From sequence record NC_041878.1: a stretch of DNA of 64,000 nucleotides. One strand, given 5' to 3'. Below are positions 3,271-47,661 of the stretch, one piece after another; positions within the stretch are counted from its first letter, which is position 1; each line of letters opens with the position of its first letter. Made by a program: the position numbers and the translations under genes. The notes under the pieces are model-generated. The model was not told where the DNA came from and searched no databases. It was given only the letters and a program-made list of their open reading frames with translations.

Positions 3271-3441
3271 ATGTTTGGTTTTTTTAGGAAGATCTTTTGT
3301 GGGCATTACGTGAGTATGGAAGTTTGTAAGATCCATTACTTACCTGGCAGTACTGAATTGATTTATACCAAAGTCTGTAAAGGTTGTGGAAAGAAGTTAG
3401 GTAACAGTACAACTAAACAAGTAGGCAAATATGAAAAATAA
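3271..3441 (+). CDS. Small Cys/His protein (FCGH...CxxC)
   Basis: 56-aa ORF read by eye: MFGFFRKIFCGH...VCKGCGKK. Confidence 0.55.
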   Translation: MFGFFRKIFCGHYVSMEVCKIHYLPGSTELIYTKVCKGCGKKLGNSTTKQVGKYEK

Positions 3442-3574
3442 GCAAGTTCCTTCGTATGAACCGGATGACGGTCCATTAACTCCTGAACAAATCGAAGCAA
3501 TACGTAAGCTAAGTGGTGCTTCACATTTAACCGAAGCTGATTTTAAAAATAGTCTATTCGATGAAAAAGAATAA
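3431..3574 (+). CDS. Small hypothetical protein
   Basis: 47-aa ORF read by eye: MKNKQVPSYEPDDGPLTPEQIEAIRK. Confidence 0.55.
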   Translation: MKNKQVPSYEPDDGPLTPEQIEAIRKLSGASHLTEADFKNSLFDEKE

Positions 3575-3809
3575 AGGTCTTTCGGACTTCATTCAAAGAG
3601 CCATGAACACTCCTGATATGATTCAGCGTGGTAAGATTCATGGTACTGATTCACAAATGCATCATAATTTATCTCGTAAAGAGATAATGAAACTTCTTGA
3701 TGCTGGTGATAAAGGTACTGATACAGAAATAACTGGCAGTACTTCAGAAGAAAGAAAATCAAGTTTACGCAGTATTCTTGATGAACAAAAAAAGAAAAAA
3801 GGTACTTAG
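3561..3809 (+). CDS. Hypothetical protein
   Basis: 82-aa ORF followed by AAAGGTAC/GTACCTTT terminator. Confidence 0.6.
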   Translation: MKKNKGLSDFIQRAMNTPDMIQRGKIHGTDSQMHHNLSRKEIMKLLDAGDKGTDTEITGSTSEERKSSLRSILDEQKKKKGT

Positions 3810-10550: not shown

Positions 10551-10561
10551 CAAAGTACTAT

Positions 10562-19213: not shown

Positions 19214-19405
19214 ATGACAGCATATGAAATGTGTATTGCGAACATTGCTCGTAAAGTCCGTTCTACCAACCATAACACCGCTGAAGGTGTACAAATGCCA
19301 TCTGCATTTGAGTATTCAGTCGGTATTGCTGCTGGCTTTTGTAAAGATCCGAAAGAAGTTGTGATGGACATTTTCAACTTCAGCGAAGATAATCATAATT
19401 CCTGA
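19214..19405 (+). CDS. Small hypothetical protein
   Basis: TAAGTGAG RBS; ATG 19214. Confidence 0.6.
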   Translation: MTAYEMCIANIARKVRSTNHNTAEGVQMPSAFEYSVGIAAGFCKDPKEVVMDIFNFSEDNHNS

Positions 19406-19437
19406 AGGTACATTCTAGAGAAATTTAAAAAAAATCC

Positions 19438-19557
19438 TTGACAGTACTAAACAATGTGCTATACTGATAAGGTTCAAGCGGAAAGACAAGTTTTAAAAAT
19501 CTTCTCGCTAAAAAGTTTAAAAAAGTACTTGACAACCACTTCGTTAGATAGTACAAT
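19438..19557 (+). promoter_or_regulatory. Tandem sigma70 promoters feeding an ORF-free region
   Basis: TTGACA-N16-TATACT (19438-65) and TTGACA-N17-TACAAT (19529-57). Confidence 0.8.
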
Positions 19558-19563
19558 GTAGTC

Positions 19564-20470
19564 TCTGATAAGGAACAAAGTGTTCCGAAGCTGATAAAGA
19601 GTTCAGCGTGTTAAATCTAAAAAGAGGATTGAACGCAAATGTAACAGTTAAATATTAAATTTTATAATATTGATGACTAGGAACTTTTTTGATTTTTAAA
19701 TCTGGGCGAATGGTTCCCCCGATAACCGGAAAACTTTGAGGATCGCAATCATGAAGTAATTAACACTAATTGAATCTGATCATTTAAAATATTGCCGAGT
19801 TATTAGTGGTACGGGGCGGTGTCCAGGCAAAAAACGCCGCTACCTATTATCCACGAATGAATGACATTTTGCAAAGAACGAGTACTGCGTAAAGAGTACA
19901 AGCTGAGAGGAAACCGATACTCTTGAAATTATCAGTTATCGGCAGAGAATCTATGAAGGCTGTTCTTGTCTGACTTCGCCGTAGAAAAGTAACGGTACAA
20001 GGGTTATGTGAGATGTGTGAATCTTGCTGTAATGATGGATAACGAGTTAAGGCGTTTGATGGCTTACAGTCGGGTGATCCGGTCACAAATTAGGAGTAGA
20101 AACACAACTAACTGATCATGGTTAGATGAAGCTAAGGCAGAGCTTTCTCGTAAGTATTTGGTACGGGTACGGTGAGATGCATACCGTGAGTGTTTCAAAC
20201 ATGTGCGAACTGTATAGCGTAGATACAGTAACTCTTTCGAGAGTTGTTTGATTAACCGCATATGTCGAACTTTCCGAACAAAGTTCAAAACAGAATTGAA
20301 GTACTACGAAGTTGCGTGTTATAATCAGTTCGGTGAGGACTAACACGCAGCGATTTAATTACTGTACTGAATTGTATCATTCACAGTTTCGAGTTTGTGA
20401 TGCAATAAGGTGATAGTAATAAGTTCGAGCAAAACATAGGTTGTCTGAGCAGTGAAGCTGTTAACTTCAT
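19564..20470 (+). ncRNA. Putative large (about 900-nt) highly structured ncRNA
   Basis: No plausible ORF or RBS for 1.2 kb; at least 12 hairpins, including AACTCT-TTCG-AGAGTT, GTTGCGTGTTA/TAACACGCAGC and ACTGTAT/ATACAGT. Confidence 0.6.
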
Positions 20471-20478
20471 GATAAGCC

Positions 20479-20507
20479 TTGACAATTAGGGAATAGCCGA
20501 CTATAAT
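20479..20507 (+). promoter_or_regulatory. Consensus sigma70 promoter
   Basis: TTGACA-N17-TATAAT. Confidence 0.85.
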
Positions 20508-20630
20508 GTGTTTATAGATTCCCCACTACCTGTAAATGGTTAGCCCAAGTGCAGTAAAGATGTTTCGGTACGGGAGTTCACACAAAAAGGACTCCCACCT
20601 TTTAAGTTAGCTGATTAAGTGAGAATAATA

Positions 20631-20861
20631 ATGAAAAACGCACTCAAAACCCAATTGTTCAAAATGATTAAGAGCACTGCATCTGAACGCAATATGTCTC
20701 AGCGTGACCTGGGGAAAGCGTTGCAGGTTTCTCAACCACGTATTTCTAACCTTCTTGACGAGCGTCAAGATCTGTTCAGTATCGATAAACTGCTTGAATT
20801 CGTTGATACGTTAGGGTATCATGTAGAAATCAAAGCAGTGGAAAAGGAGACAGTACAATGA
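20631..20861 (+). CDS. XRE/HigA-like HTH transcriptional regulator
   Basis: MSQRDLGKALQVSQPRISNLL...FSIDKL (HTH_37-like pattern). Confidence 0.85.
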   Translation: MKNALKTQLFKMIKSTASERNMSQRDLGKALQVSQPRISNLLDERQDLFSIDKLLEFVDTLGYHVEIKAVEKETVQ

Positions 20862-21007
20862 AAGAATATATTGTAGAGTACTTCCAGAAAGGCGGTTCTA
20901 ACCCGTTAGCTACTCGCCAGTTCGCACATAACGAAGCAATGGCTCGTACTAATGCGAAGAACGAAAAAGGCCAGGATATTATTATCCGCAGCGTAAAACC
21001 TGCATAA
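20858..21007 (+). CDS. Small hypothetical protein (49 aa)
   Basis: AGGAG RBS, ATGA overlap with XRE stop; terminator follows. Confidence 0.6.
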   Translation: MKEYIVEYFQKGGSNPLATRQFAHNEAMARTNAKNEKGQDIIIRSVKPA

Positions 21008-21102
21008 CAAAAGCCAGTTACCCCACATTCAGAAAAGCCAGCTTAGCTCTGGCTTTTTTTATTGGATAATTTTAGTTGTTGCTATTTTGTACGGAGATAA
21101 AA

Positions 21103-22095
21103 GTGAGTCCAAAAAAATTAAACTTAGATGATATTCAGGAAGATATCCTTGACGAATGTTTTGAAAAAGAAGAATTAACTTTAGAATCACTTGTGGTAGA
21201 TGATTCTGACGAGGATACAACTTCTGATGCTGATGATGTACATCACGGTTTAACAATGGATCAGATTAAAACACAAATTAAAGCTGACCAGTACATTAGC
21301 AACGAAGATCTAGTACGAAAAGTACAATCCGGCGTAGATGTAGAAGAATCAAAGAAACTACTTGTTATGTTCAACAGTGGTTTAGTGTACAACGAAGCGA
21401 AAAATTGTACTTGTAATATTCCATTCCAGGATAAAGTACAATATGGTTTCGAAGGTTTAATGAAAGCTATCTATGGTTTCAATACAACTTTCCGTACAAT
21501 GTTTAGTACTTATGCAACAACTACGATCCGTCAACATATGTATCGTAACGGCAATAACGATGTTCGTATGGTAGCTCTACCTGAACATCTGTCGGTTAAC
21601 AACATTCGTATACAATCTTTTATCGAACGTTATATGAATGATAATACTGGCTATCCAACTAATGAGCAAATTGCTGAAAGTACTGGAATTGATATTCGTT
21701 CAGTAAAACGTATCATGAACTATAACAGTAATACTTTTAGTATTGATACGCCAATGAACAAAGGCGACGAAGGTTCAGAACAAACACTAAAAGATATTAT
21801 CCCTGGTGAAAGTGCTGATTATGTGGTTGATGAACGTTGTGTTGCAAAAGACTTTGTAAGTACAATGGAAGAAATCATGAATGAACTTGAAGAACATGAA
21901 CGTGTTCTACTTGGATTAGTTCACGGTTTAGATGGTTATCGTATCCATACGTTTGATGAAATTATTAACACTGGATACATTGATGGTAAAGGAAAGTTCG
22001 TAACTTCTAAAGCTACACTATCTCGTCGTTACAATGATATGATGGATAAAGTACGTCGTATTGTTGAACGTAAACAAATCAACTTTGATCTTTAA
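21103..22095 (+). CDS. sigma70-family RNA polymerase sigma factor
   Basis: Region 2 (LV...QxGFEGLMKAIxxF...FSTYATxxIRQ), region 3 (PTNEQIAESTGI...SIDTP), divergent region 4; acidic N-terminus; GTG after GGAG. Confidence 0.9.
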   Translation: MSPKKLNLDDIQEDILDECFEKEELTLESLVVDDSDEDTTSDADDVHHGLTMDQIKTQIKADQYISNEDLVRKVQSGVDVEESKKLLVMFNSGLVYNEAKNCTCNIPFQDKVQYGFEGLMKAIYGFNTTFRTMFSTYATTTIRQHMYRNGNNDVRMVALPEHLSVNNIRIQSFIERYMNDNTGYPTNEQIAESTGIDIRSVKRIMNYNSNTFSIDTPMNKGDEGSEQTLKDIIPGESADYVVDERCVAKDFVSTMEEIMNELEEHERVLLGLVHGLDGYRIHTFDEIINTGYIDGKGKFVTSKATLSRRYNDMMDKVRRIVERKQINFDL

Positions 22096-26274: not shown

Positions 26275-26279
26275 TTAAA

Positions 26280-26308
26280 TGAAACCACGGATTTTTTTAT
26301 GGTATAAT
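26280..26308 (+). promoter_or_regulatory. TGAAAC-N17-TATAAT promoter (stable-RNA class)
   Basis: Same -35, TGG and -10 geometry as the two tRNA promoters. Confidence 0.7.
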
Positions 26309-26313
26309 CATAT

Positions 26314-26830
26314 AGACAATCCTGCTTGATAGGGAGAGAAATCTTCCTAATGATTGAATCCCTACTTCGATGAAAATGTAATTGGAGAGTTGAGAAGTTC
26401 AGGCAGTTCGGAGAGCAAAAGAAACCCGTTAGGAGATGGCATAGTTTGTACCACCCACGGCAATGCGGCTCTATAAAGAAGTACATCTAATCGTTACCAG
26501 TACTTCCTCGATAGACATATAAGTGCAACCTTACCAAAAACGATAAGGGAGAATATGCACCAATTTTGTACAATATAGATCCGTCCAAAATTTGTGAATC
26601 ATATTCAAGTACTTTGTTTGATTGTATAGACAAGTATTAAGTGAGCTAAGACCTCGACCGTTGTTAGAACTGAAATAGGAAGAAACAGGACAACCCGCTT
26701 CCGTGCTGAAAAGTAATTTTCAATACAATTGCCGACGACTATCATCGTCAGTTTTCATCCTCCTGCGGGGGGATGAAATTGCCTCTACAAATCTCGTCAG
26801 TAATAAATGTGTTGAACAGTACAACGATTG
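26314..26830 (+). ncRNA. Putative approx. 500-nt structured ncRNA
   Basis: No ORF; hairpins GTGCA/TGCAC enclosing CCTTA/TAAGG, TGAAAA/TTTTCA, GACGA/TCGTC, TTTCATCC-TCC-TGC-GGG-GGATGAAA. Confidence 0.55.
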
Positions 26831-26948
26831 AATTTTAAATATGATTTTCTTGCAGCGAAGCGTAAGAAAATCCTTGACTTGCTTCAGCAAGGCGAGTACA
26901 CTACTCGAATTGAAGCATAAACAAATCATAAAATATGAGGTACATCTG

Positions 26949-45464: not shown

Positions 45465-45474
45465 TTTAAATCTC

Positions 45475-45563
45475 CTATTGATTATTTGTTAATGTATTAG
45501 GGAATGAACGATCATCTCCATAAATTATTCTTACAGCACCACCAATTGCGGAAAAGGTAACAT
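45475..45563 (-). pseudogene. Collapsed MLPF-family gene (N-terminus joined out of frame to a GAVRIIYG C-terminus)
   Basis: AAGGAG RBS, MLPFPQLVVL*; shifted frame reads AIGGAVRIIYGDDRSFPNTLTNNQ*; TAAATA at 45627-32 (minus). Confidence 0.65.
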
Positions 45564-46216
45564 ACTTTTATCTCCTTCTTATTTTTTTATACGTCTCTAT
45601 TATACTATGATAGAAACTAATATAGGTATTTACCCACTTTATCATTCCTAGACACTCCTTAGAACACATGCTATAATCCCCCTAGAAGCTCGTAGAACGC
45701 TCTACAACGCACGTGTTTGATTCCTGTAGTATCGCTATTGCGATATCGAAAGGATTCAAACTAGCTAAAATAGCGTTCACGATATTCTATGTATTAATAT
45801 ACAGTACTGTAATAATACACAATATGGATAAGTTATCAGTACTATATGTTTGTACAGGAAAAGATAGGTTCTATCTTATAGTACTATAGAAGTACAGTTC
45901 AGTACTGTTGACCCCTTCCGCTATATCCGTTCCTGAAGTCGAATGCGAATAGCACAAAAAGTACAGCAACCTTTTTTCAAAAATGATAACATGAGGTTGG
46001 GAAAAATCTGGAGTGATCGTGAAATCAAATACGAATCAAGGAAATTTTGGAGTACCCTTCAGACTTTTTCTGAGATCTCGAAAGTACACCAAAGTAAAGA
46101 CGCATCGTAGAAATTACGTTCAATACTATAATACAAATACAAAGTACTGAAAATTTATACAGTACTGTTATTATGCACAGTGCAATATAAATTTTAAAAT
46201 CAGATGAAAAAAGTAC

Positions 46217-46370
46217 TTGACGAGGGATGATGGAATTGATACTATAGCTACAAGTTAAGGAGACAGGCAACGGTCAAGCCTCTCAGCCACGTAGCCTGGA
46301 ACCTTAACAGTACTGCAATGATGGTTGCCCCCTGATTTGCAGTCCTCTTACCAGAGGTGTTCTCTTCATT
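46217..46370 (+). ncRNA. Promoter-fed structured small RNA candidate
   Basis: TTGACG-N17-TACTAT (46217-45); GTTAAGG/CCTTAAC, AGGC/GCCT, ACTGCAA/TTGCAGT, CCTCT/AGAGG. Confidence 0.45.
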
Positions 46371-46599
46371 GCTTAGGAAACATTAAGTACTAAGCGTGTT
46401 AAAAATTTGAAGTACTTTATAGTACTATGCAGTGTACATTCTACTAAGTCATCCTGCCAATAACTTTTGAATGTATAGTGCTAGTACTATATCTTTTTAA
46501 GTGAGAATATTAGTACTGTATAAGTACTGATGAATTACCAAAGTACAGATACAATGAGGGTATATGTTGTCTGAATTTTGGGTGTACTATCCCTATCTG

Positions 46600-46730
46600 C
46601 TATCTTCAGATGGATAGACTTCTGGCGGTGTAGATGGCTGGATGTTTAAACGTCTAGACTGCTATCCTTCTGGATGGCTAAAAGGCTAGATGGCTATCCG
46701 TATAGATGGATAGACGTTTAGACGGCTAAA
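46600..46730. repeat. Iteron-like short direct repeats (TAGATGGCTA / AGATGGATAGAC)
   Basis: At least 6 imperfect copies of T(A/G)GA(T/C)GG(C/A)T in about 130 bp. Confidence 0.6.
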
Positions 46731-46912
46731 TGATTTTTTCTGTCAAAATTCCATTAGCTCCCCTTCCGCGACTGGATAGAACCAGGCAGAATCGAAAGTC
46801 GTCTTTTCGTGTTGACAGGGATATAATACCACACTGAAAAACAATTGCAAGGGATTTTTTGCAGAAAAATAAATTTGACAAGTGAACCAGGATTATAGTA
46901 CTATATAAGCAA

Positions 46913-46946
46913 GCCAGAGAAATGGCCTAGCCCACAGGGTGCGGAG
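46913..46946 (+). repeat. Two-hairpin element copy 1
   Basis: GCC-AGAGAAAT-GGC + GCCCACAGGGTGCGGAG; TTGACA at 46875. Confidence 0.85.
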
Positions 46947-46984
46947 ATCCGTCTATTGCTTTTTATTTGAATTTTGGACACAAT

Positions 46985-47017
46985 TCCGCACCCTGTGGGT
47001 CAAGGAGTTTCGCCTCC
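46985..47017 (-). repeat. Two-hairpin element copy 2 (convergent with copy 1)
   Basis: GGAG-GCGAAA-CTCC + ACCCACAGGGTGCGGA; minus-strand TTGCAT-N17-CATAAT upstream. Confidence 0.85.
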
Positions 47018-47088
47018 ATGTAAAGTATTATGCCAGTACTGCGAACATAATGCAAGGACTTTTTACGATTTTCTTTAAAAAAGTTTCC

Positions 47089-47222
47089 CCTTCTATATAC
47101 GTATAAAGGAAGCGTTTAGAGCGTGTCAGATCCTGGGGCTTACAGTTTTGTACTTTATACTTTATAAAGCCGTGTAAAGCGTCCTATGCGTTCCTTGTAC
47201 GTGTATACGTATATAGAGAAGG
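47089..47222. repeat. Long imperfect inverted repeat
   Basis: CCTTCTATATACGTATA-AAGGAAGCG ... CGTTCCTT...TATACGTATATAGAGAAGG. Confidence 0.65.
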
Positions 47223-47266
47223 AAAAGCCTGTTAGAAAGAATCTTATAAAAACTTATATAAAGTAC

Positions 47267-47661
47267 TTGCAAAGGTTTTTTGGTGTGATAGTATTAATCC
47301 CGTCGAACAGGACAACGCTCTTTAAAAACTTGCTGGTGAATACTTAAACATGCCTCCAGGTACTTTGAAAAAAGAATCTGAGAGAATGAAAAAGTACTTG
47401 ACAGCAAGAATAGAAAGTGTAGAATGTTCAATATCGAAAGGCGGTAAGGTTCGCCGGATGGTAGGAAGCGGTAGCAGGGCGATAAAGTACTGCTACAGTG
47501 ATAAGCCGGAAGTGCTATCACAGCGTTATAAAGGTTAACATAACTGTTAACGTCCTATCTACTGCCTTTTGATTCTTTCAGTACGGTAAAAGGTACGAAA
47601 GAATAAAGATTCAGAAAGTTATCAAAAAGTACTTGACGGACTGAATCGCACGATGTAAGAT
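47267..47661 (+). promoter_or_regulatory. Three tandem early promoters with boxA
   Basis: TTGCAA..TAGTAT (47267-94), CGCTCTTTAAAA boxA-like (47316-27), TTGACA..TAGAAT (47398-425), TTGACG-N17-TAAGAT (47633-61). Confidence 0.75.
47437..47569 (+). ncRNA. Multibranch structured RNA / leader
   Basis: AAAGGCGGTA/TACTGCCTTT closing stem; inner GTAGCAG/CTGCTAC, GTGATA/TATCAC, GTTAAC/GTTAAC. Confidence 0.5.

Follow-up and report, generated by a model that had tools for sequence, protein, structure and literature searches.

What does a genome otherwise packed with genes keep in 1,225 nucleotides (nt) that carry no annotated gene? The question is raised by Pectobacterium phage vB_PcaM_CBB (CBB; NC_041878/KU574722), a Rak2-like jumbo myovirus (genus Mimasvirus) with a genome of 378 kb, in a 64,000-nt stretch of its genome which is called the window here, and in which a position equals the record position minus 310,000. 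The gap spans 19406-20630, between the end of gp469 at 19405 and the start of a helix-turn-helix (HTH) gene at 20631, and it is the largest in window 1-45,464, the part dense in genes, where the runner-up measures 674 nt, all others are shorter than 270 nt and the usual spacer is shorter than 120 nt. A preliminary description of the window had pointed to this 1.2-kb gap in a dense genome, and the gap is borne out by the annotation. According to the analysis reported here, window 19563 to about 20606 on the plus strand most plausibly holds an independent gene whose product, a large structured non-coding RNA (ncRNA), belongs to a class not described before, and we are highly confident that such a gene exists.

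The hairpins that can be seen in CBB do not settle the matter by themselves. All ten hairpins listed in the preliminary description are in the sequence at the positions it gave, yet in CBB taken alone they are hardly denser than chance would have it: the 794-nt CBB core has a minimum free energy (MFE) of -205.1 kcal/mol, with z = -2.1 against 20 shuffles. The hairpin observation is unconvincing on its own and cannot separate a structured RNA from an AT-rich spacer, and it is the comparison with related phages that is decisive.

By blastn, the region was found in 18 phage records. Among Mimasvirus and relatives it is carried by CBB, GAP32, XbC2 and Kaldavass, and among Eneladusvirus by BF, six pEa_SNUABM phages, fHe-Yen9-03 and fHe-Yen9-04, so that the element is present in all sequenced phages of both genera, and also in several metagenomic relatives. 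Between the genera, DNA identity is 68% over 740 nt for the RNA element and 76% for the sigma-factor genes. The synteny is shared as well, with the same small genes upstream, then the RNA, then the HTH gene (where there is one), a small open reading frame (ORF) and the sigma-factor gene; the order of RNA, optional HTH or other small ORF, small ORF and sigma factor was found in GAP32, XbC2, Kaldavass, BF, pEa44, Yen904, L022 and L025. The first gene downstream varies by lineage (HTH, an ORF of 126-155 amino acids (aa), or none), while the RNA is constant.

Scanning IMG/VR and JGI metagenomes for the pattern of the best-conserved block yielded further lineages. The metagenomic locus L023 is 93% identical to CBB, L013/L024 and L018 are related to XbC2 and Kaldavass, and L016/L022 share only the 5' half of the element with CBB. 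In L022 (5036-5665; Ga0308168_1001746) the 5' domain is kept and the 3' part is different, with a fold z of -6.2 against shuffles. In L025 (334-820; Ga0308166_1000037, a 349-kb contig) only the promoter, the invariant block A described below and about 50 nt after it are kept, followed by an unrelated structured sequence with a fold z of -3.4 against shuffles. Both elements belong to uncultured jumbo phages and still lie upstream of a sigma-factor gene, and they may define the minimal functional core. Other hits did not hold: six IMG/VR contigs from a 17-mer scan all failed the covariance model and were discarded as chance matches, as was a Saprospiraceae metagenome-assembled genome, the sole match in the genome collection. 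Mimicry of a host sequence was rejected as well, with no match found in 5,426 complete E. coli genomes (blastn, E <= 10).

In CBB, the RNA is made up of the following parts, its start at about 19563 being inferred from the sequence.

19563-20352, plus strand: conserved core, with a length of about 790 nt in CBB and 621-973 nt in relatives
19624-19647, plus strand: block A, GAGGAUUGAACGCA(A/G)AUGUAACAG, invariant in all lineages including the most divergent, L022 and L025
19648-19861, plus strand: expansion domain of variable length, closed off by helix P2; blocks A and C are 97-258 nt apart depending on the lineage
19749-19761, plus strand: conserved UCAUGAAGUAAUU block inside the variable domain
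19859-20002, plus strand: 5' central domain, seven helices, covariance model R1
20003-20098, plus strand: variable linker between the conserved domains, with large insertions in GAP32, XbC2, Kaldavass, L013 and L018
20099-20351, plus strand: 3' domain, 11 helices with 69 pairs, from a MAFFT alignment of nine lineages folded with RNAalifold
20296-20313, plus strand: conserved strand UUGaAGUACUACGAAGUU, largely unpaired

The alignment of syntenic relatives, which the preliminary description had named as a check, was carried out and revealed covariation in two separately tested domains. The 3' domain consists of these helices, all on the plus strand.

20099-105/20190-96: H1
20108-14/20119-25: H2
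20128-33/20141-46: H3
20166-71/20180-85: H4
20199-207/20257-65: H5
20210-15/20223-28: H6
20232-35/20240-43: H7
20246-48/20254-56: H8
20267-73/20280-86: H9
20311-21/20341-51: H10
20325-27/20334-36: H11

Standard pairs fill 96.2% of the alignment cells of this domain, compared with 33-47% when the 3' partners are slid by one to three columns, and double changes were found in 33 of the 69 pairs but in only 3-10 after sliding. In 500 column shuffles, the observed pairing, double-change count and covariation score were never reached. Seven of the hairpins picked out in CBB lie in this domain (20108-25, 20168-88, 20209-29, 20230-45, 20267-86, 20311-51 and part of 20147-67), and six of the seven are the covarying helices H2, H4, H6, H7, H9 and H10. 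The hairpins at 19572-86 and 20371-406 are lineage-specific.

For the 5' central domain, RNAalifold on the raw MAFFT alignment gave a poor consensus with hairpin arms out of register, and because the raw alignment misplaced these arms, constrained folds between the AUGAAC and GUUCAU anchors were made for each lineage instead. The same nested topology was recovered in nearly all lineages, with the following helices on the plus strand.

19863-65/19968-70: P3ext
19874-79/19962-67: P3
19883-86/19895-98: P3a
19900-03/19958-61: P3b
19906-09/19949-52: P3c
19913-19/19937-43: P3d
19978-82/19992-96: P4

The covariance model R1, with a seed of only four Mimasvirus sequences and a structure written by hand, matched CBB (67.9 bits, E = 1e-12), L023, BF (52.5 bits), L022 (39.5 bits) and Yen904 (25.2 bits, E = 0.005), and gave no match in the distant phages, in L025 or in the chance loci. 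Across the 33 pairs of the domain, pairing holds in 92.5% of cells (31-43% in slid controls), and 20 pairs carry double changes versus 1-8, a result equalled by 0 of 500 shuffles. Compensation is also visible by eye, with AAGAAC...GUUCUU in CBB and L023 and AUGAAC...GUUCAU in every other lineage. Taken together, the two domains hold 102 tested pairs in 18 helices, with double changes in 53 pairs. A long-range pairing of ACUUCG (19973-78) with CGAAGU (20306-11) is not claimed, being broken in GAP32 and Yen904.

Block A can be placed in the same fold by two helices. The 5' CUCU (19563-19566) is able to pair with AGAG (19623-19626) as helix P1, and GCAAAUGUAACAG is able to pair with UGACAUUUUGCA (19862-19873, the invariant UGACAnnUUGC block) as helix P2; both pairings fit every lineage that has a partner. 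Block A also reads as GAGGA-N10-AUG-UAA, which resembles a Shine-Dalgarno sequence followed by a start codon with a stop directly after it. The Shine-Dalgarno-like part and the AUG-UAA part would both be paired in the proposed fold, in helices P1 and P2, and the resemblance to a site of ribosome binding may be a coincidence. As well, block A shares a 10-nt identity with the 5' end of 16S rRNA (GAUUGAACGC), which is unsupported by any small-subunit rRNA model match.

The strand of the RNA can also be assigned. The 3' domain contains invariant G-U pairs, e.g., at columns 44/62 and 245/283, which would be A-C mismatches on the opposite strand, and therefore the RNA is placed on the plus strand. 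The plus strand is further supported by its lower MFE (-205 versus -167 kcal/mol, better by 38), by an excess of G over C in the sense strand (23.7% and 15.9%) and by a conserved plus-strand promoter.

The longest ORFs that the gap offers on its minus strand reach 79 aa and 74 aa, the plus strand has none above 41 aa, and no conserved ORF was found among the relatives compared. Substitutions are spread evenly over codon positions (chi-square p = 0.69-0.92 in seven pairwise homolog comparisons), and between 2 of 12 and 7 of 17 indels in the RNA locus are divisible by three, depending on the phage pair. In the sigma-factor gene of the same pairs, used as a control, p ranges from 3e-15 to 3e-28 and every indel preserves the frame. 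A protein-coding gene or a cluster of small ORFs was thus rejected, since periodicity is absent, indels break the frame and the ORFs are unconserved. Several deposited genomes do carry ORFs over the locus, namely GAP32_487A (L002 3116-3283), BF gp415 (L003 2925-3293, minus strand) and gp414 (3385-3600), and six tiny ORFs in Kaldavass (CDS0114-0120, L006 1524-2998). As these differ in strand, frame and position and none is conserved, they are probably annotation artefacts over an RNA gene, and the present finding corrects the annotation of these genomes.

The signals for transcription were located by matching the plus strand to the 12-position sigma-70 consensus and by looking for hairpins in front of the next gene.

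19438-19465, plus strand: promoter P1 (TTGACA-16-TATACT, TG-extended, with an A-rich UP-like tract in front), 11 of 12 consensus positions
19529-19557, plus strand: promoter P2 (TTGACA-17-TACAAT), 11 of 12 consensus positions
20353-20606, plus strand: optional 3' extension with a hairpin at 20371-20406, a hairpin at 20450-20471, promoter P3, a conserved segment and a terminator-like hairpin
20479-20507, plus strand: promoter P3, embedded in the 3' extension, 12 of 12 consensus positions
20572-20606, plus strand: terminator-like hairpin GGGAGU...ACUCCC followed by ACCUUUUAAG (CBB sequence)

Two TTGACA promoters had been noticed before, and promoter P3 was found in addition to them. Promoters P1 and P2 form a tandem duplication, which reaches into the first transcribed bases CTGATAAGG. 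Promoter P1 is kept in CBB, GAP32, XbC2, Kaldavass and BF/pEa44, while TTGACA-17-TAnnAT stands at the position of promoter P2 in 13 of 13 homologs examined, and the promoter is doubled in most lineages. In every lineage, a GC-rich hairpin followed by ACUUUUAAUU lies immediately before the ribosome-binding site of the next ORF; the module between core and terminator, with its hairpins and promoter P3, is optional and occurs in some lineages only. The predicted transcript length ranges from 568 nt (L022) to 1,242 nt (XbC2), with about 1,045 nt in CBB if the RNA ends at the terminator. The span given in the preliminary description, 19438-20470, takes in the promoters and the conserved core (about 19563-20352) but ends before the probable 3' end; the transcript probably extends about 250 nt past it, with promoter P3 inside that extension.

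The 3' extension contains a covarying helix, GGGAA/UUCCC in CBB and GAGCA/UGCUC in BF, and because its 5' arm sits in the spacer of promoter P3, this helix would form only in transcripts coming from upstream. No recognisable promoter was found between the RNA and the next ORF in GAP32, BF, Yen904 or L022, so the downstream genes of these phages would rely on read-through or on unrecognised promoters. The segment 20508-20606, from promoter P3 to the HTH gene, is kept in CBB, XbC2, Kaldavass, L013, L018 and BF/pEa44. Transcripts initiated at promoter P3 would have it as a 5' leader, about 100 nt long and with its own terminator, which could act as an attenuator of the HTH/sigma operon.

To which known RNA could the element belong? 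A covariance model search of the kind suggested at the outset (GOLLD, ROOL, OLE, introns and RNase P) was run with Rfam 15 (4,227 families) and matched no such family: at gathering score, only transfer RNAs (tRNAs) were found in the whole window, nothing beyond chance level was found in 19300-20700 at E <= 10 (best E = 0.83), and none of six homolog loci had a match within the element at E <= 0.5. OLE, raiA, HEARO and other large bacterial ncRNAs of Rfam were rejected for lack of a model match, as were RNase P RNA, tmRNA, signal recognition particle RNA, 6S RNA and rRNA fragments, and ARAGORN detected no tRNA or tmRNA in the RNA region. Group I and II introns had no Rfam match either, and the flanking gp469 and HTH genes are complete and unrelated genes, not halves of one. 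A CsrA sponge was also dismissed, as a rough count by eye gave about 8 GGA motifs in 800 nt, close to the number expected. No description of an RNA at this locus was found in the literature searched. The CBB genome paper treats promoters and the early region but not this gap (PMC5259590), and a screen of 10,006 viral structured-RNA candidates comprised motifs of 29-151 nt only (PMC10690425).

In its general features, the RNA resembles the orphan large ornate RNAs GOLLD and ROOL, with a size of about 0.6-1 kb, many helices with expansion segments, a phage genome as its location and discovery by comparison (cryo-EM structures of GOLLD and ROOL in PMC12286853). However, there is no match to their models even at E <= 10, the CBB RNA is not beside tRNA genes (the nearest ends at 10551, about 9 kb upstream), and it occurs in Enterobacterales jumbo phages, whereas theirs belong to Lactobacillales or to lake or rumen organisms. 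Since the covariance models fail and the tRNA adjacency is missing, the RNA is placed outside both families. By the operational definition of a large ornate structured ncRNA, it is longer than 500 nt and non-coding and has covarying helices and conserved unpaired blocks, and we rate it as a new class within that known kind. Of the two branches left open at first, a known class or a new one, the GOLLD/ROOL branch fails at the covariance models and the new-class branch holds.

The nearest precedent is a set of ORF-free transcripts in the wider Rak2-related group. RNA-seq of PA5oct, a distantly related Pseudomonas jumbo phage, detected ORF-free transcripts of 236-619 nt, two of which each make up 2-5% of phage reads and are abundant from early infection (PMC7318152). 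Its ncRNA001, ncRNA002 and ncRNA004 are like the CBB RNA in their hundreds of nt, their lack of ORFs and their phage group; they were defined by expression, whereas the CBB RNA is defined by structure and conservation from sequence. They were rejected as homologs, with no sequence similarity detected.

The genes behind the RNA, all outside it, were as the preliminary description had them, an XRE-type HTH regulator and a sigma factor following directly downstream.

20631-20861, plus strand: HTH_37 regulator
20858-21007, plus strand: 49-aa ORF
21103-22095, plus strand: sigma-70-family factor

In BF, the HTH gene is apparently missing and the counterpart of the 49-aa ORF comes directly after the terminator. 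In CBB, window 21008-21102 behind the 49-aa ORF holds a strong intrinsic terminator (AAAAGCCAG-CUUAGCU-CUGGCUUUUUUU). Because this terminator follows the 49-aa ORF, the CBB sigma-factor gene would be insulated from upstream transcription; no promoter of its own was identified in CBB by the sigma-70 consensus scan.

What, then, might the RNA do? In the explanation that we favour, host sigma-70 RNA polymerase would transcribe it at a high level right after DNA entry. The early gene block of CBB was described as a cluster of RpoD-like promoters with UP elements and small genes, related to host takeover (PMC5259590), and since the same paper assigns this block to the earliest phase, the RNA would be made by the host enzyme within minutes; the doubled promoter suggests high levels. 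Most transcripts would end at the terminator and accumulate as folded RNA, while read-through would supply the HTH, small-ORF and sigma genes in lineages without promoter P3. The RNA would then act in trans via its tertiary fold, and the invariant 24-nt block A, along with other invariant junction and loop nucleotides, may form a binding or active site for a conserved partner. RNAs whose action depends on an exact three-dimensional fold typically show invariant unpaired or junction nucleotides amid covarying helices. As a guess, the RNA could be a scaffold or decoy for a protein in transcription takeover, either host RNA polymerase/sigma-70 or the sigma factor of the phage; such a partner is proposed only because the RNA gene stays beside the sigma-factor gene even in the most divergent lineages (L025). 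A trans-acting scaffold or decoy is put forward tentatively, as a mechanism that we would sooner doubt than assert, and with existence and mechanism blended, the favoured explanation as a whole appears fairly probable.

A known RNA with such a type of action is 6S RNA, which has about 180 nt, forms one long irregular hairpin with a central bubble and binds the sigma-70 holoenzyme by open-promoter mimicry. The likeness lies in the proposed binding of the transcription machinery and in the neighbourhood of the CBB RNA to a sigma-factor gene; on the other hand, the CBB RNA is four to six times larger and multi-branched and has no 6S model match.

Several points weigh against this explanation. The link to transcription is proposed from synteny, and the sequence has no resemblance to 6S RNA or any known RNA polymerase-binding RNA. 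The distant Rak2-like phages fENko-Kae01, Hallingskeid, EJP2 and 121Q have a sigma factor (34-43% protein identity) with no gap upstream of it, no conserved blocks and no R1 match, so the RNA is not required for sigma function generally, and the 3' domain is not essential to the core function, as it is absent from L022 and L025. The start site, 3' end and abundance of the RNA are predictions. As to the structure, the single-sequence z-score of CBB (-2.1) is weak, there are only about 6-8 independent lineages, and covariation was counted per sequence rather than per evolutionary event. The tests cover the 5' central and 3' domains, with about 300 nt of the CBB core (variable domain and linker) lying outside them, and the two helices of block A fit the model but are unproven, because both sides are invariant and hence show no covariation. 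Moreover, since alignment A4 of the 5' domain came from a fit to the model, it is biased toward structure, although this is offset by the slid controls and by the agreement of lineages outside the seed.

Alternatively, the element might be no separate RNA but a giant cis-acting leader of the HTH/small-ORF/sigma operon, whose fold and terminator would set read-through by attenuation or antitermination. Such a role would suit the terminator that stands immediately before the ribosome-binding site in every lineage, the need of GAP32, BF, Yen904 and L022 to read through the hairpin and ACUUUUAAUU to reach their downstream genes, the conserved upstream AAAG and UG bases, which could pair with the region of the terminator U-tract, and the sigma synteny kept even in L025. 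However, known bacterial leaders, riboswitches and antitermination RNAs measure 50-250 nt and not 600-1,200 nt, and in five lineages the consensus promoter P3 lies downstream of the core and bypasses it. The strong terminator between the 49-aa ORF and the sigma gene in CBB is also difficult to reconcile with a leader, as is the first downstream gene, which changes (HTH, 126-155 aa ORF, none) under an unchanged RNA. We thus consider a cis-acting leader unlikely, and it does not exclude an additional role in trans.

The RNA could also, like GOLLD and ROOL, assemble with copies of itself into a quaternary structure made of RNA only. It recalls these RNAs in its size class, its ornate build of several domains, its expansion segments and its phage location (PMC12286853), and the 3' domain offers a candidate contact.

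20274-20333, plus strand: candidate kissing contact of the H9 loop CCGAAC (20274-79) with the H11 loop GUUCGG (20328-33)

These two invariant hairpin loops are perfectly complementary, with 54 of 54 cells paired in nine lineages versus 7-50% in slid controls, and they co-vary in Yen904 (CCAAAC/GUUUGG); 54 of 500 shuffles were as good, and the Yen904 change is the single compensatory event. The contact is suggestive only, and an intramolecular and an intermolecular form are indistinguishable by sequence. Between molecules, the CCGAAC/GUUCGG loops might act in the manner of the phi29 pRNA ring. The pRNA, of about 120-174 nt, is part of the packaging motor of phi29-like Bacillus phages. It is likewise a phage-encoded structured RNA with complementary loop-loop contacts, but there is no homology, and the loop pairing in CBB rests on one covarying event. 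Against self-assembly also stand the lack of homology to GOLLD or ROOL, the absence of adjacent tRNA genes (the nearest about 9 kb away) and the absence of the loop pair, which belongs to the 3' domain, from L022 and L025, and we regard self-assembly as improbable. Just as speculative would be a new host-takeover machine, either a large ribozyme whose active site would consist of block A and its invariant partners or an RNA-only multimer in the manner of ROOL or GOLLD, formed within minutes of infection.

A replication-origin transcript, i.e., a structured primer RNA that persists as a hybrid like ColE1 RNA II or the T4 origin transcript, would account for a long structured untranslated RNA, a strong promoter and the AT-rich tract at 19650-19700. 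ColE1 RNA II illustrates that primers can be about 550 nt long and highly structured. Nevertheless, no iterons or direct repeats were found here except the promoter duplication, the gene orientation is identical on both sides of the RNA, an iteron-like array lies elsewhere, at the terminal-repeat boundary (46590-46730), and 600-1,200 nt with two-domain conservation exceed the needs of priming, which together make an origin transcript very improbable. Conservation at the level of DNA or protein (a cluster of binding sites, decayed pseudogenes or small proteins, with no functional RNA) is hardly credible. The three promoters within 1.1 kb and the small ORFs called by other annotators (GAP32_487A, BF gp415 and the six in Kaldavass) speak for it, but those ORF calls are discordant in strand, frame and position, codon periodicity is lacking, indels break the frame, and binding sites or pseudogenes would not keep more than 50 pairs via compensatory double changes with one-strand G-U pairs.

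Structured ncRNAs longer than 500 nt are rare in bacteria and phages, and the ones with a known function do fundamental jobs (rRNA, RNase P, self-splicing introns). The orphan classes GOLLD, ROOL, OLE and raiA have drawn intense structural interest, mostly in organisms that are hard to manipulate. The class proposed here occurs in isolated, propagable phages (CBB, GAP32, BF, pEa_SNUABM and fHe-Yen9-04) of culturable Enterobacterales hosts, and because its promoters and terminator are clear, knock-down, deletion, pull-down and cryo-EM of the RNA would be feasible. Its fixed place before a phage sigma-factor gene provides a testable hypothesis on how jumbo phages take over host transcription. 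If a host-takeover machine were indeed encoded here, then, along with a second RNA 6 kb downstream, Rak2-like jumbo phages would deploy a set of large functional RNAs early, in hosts amenable to genetics.

This second structured RNA, of about 480 nt, lies at about 26312-26790 on the plus strand, in the second-largest gap (26275-26948, 674 nt), and was first seen as homologous gaps near the sigma gene in 121Q and EJP2. It was found in 62 phage records (Escherichia, Salmonella, Erwinia, Yersinia and others; CBB match 26388-26810), including 121Q, PBECO4, phAPEC6, EJP2, GAP32 and SE_PL, with homolog loci at L010 5020-5545 (121Q), L011 7295-7830 (EJP2), L035, L036 and L037. An extended -10 promoter (TGGTATAAT, about 26299-26307) stands just behind a terminator-like hairpin, and a 3' hairpin was found at 26758-26777. 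RNAalifold on six genus-level lineages predicted 76 pairs, 36 of them with double changes, and no Rfam family matched. CBB and 121Q are about 70% identical in the second RNA, compared with only 34% protein identity for their sigma factors. Both RNAs lie in the same genome region and on the same strand, each with its own sigma-70-type promoter, a 3' hairpin and strong covariation; however, they have no sequence similarity, and the second is shorter and far more widespread, including in genera without the first.

Finally, a 1.9-kb ORF-poor stretch at 45465-47349 runs across the start of the terminal repeat and is conserved in GAP32 (84%), in BF (74%, at its genome start) and in fHe-Yen9-04, with no meaningful Rfam match. 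Rather than an RNA, it seems to be an element that acts at the DNA level, in packaging, at the genome ends or in replication. The array at 46590-46730 consists of iteron-like direct repeats, TAGATGG(A/C)TA and variants, and a sub-segment of about 130 nt within the stretch has matches in unrelated phages of Vibrio, Aeromonas and E. coli, where it often lies close to a genome end.

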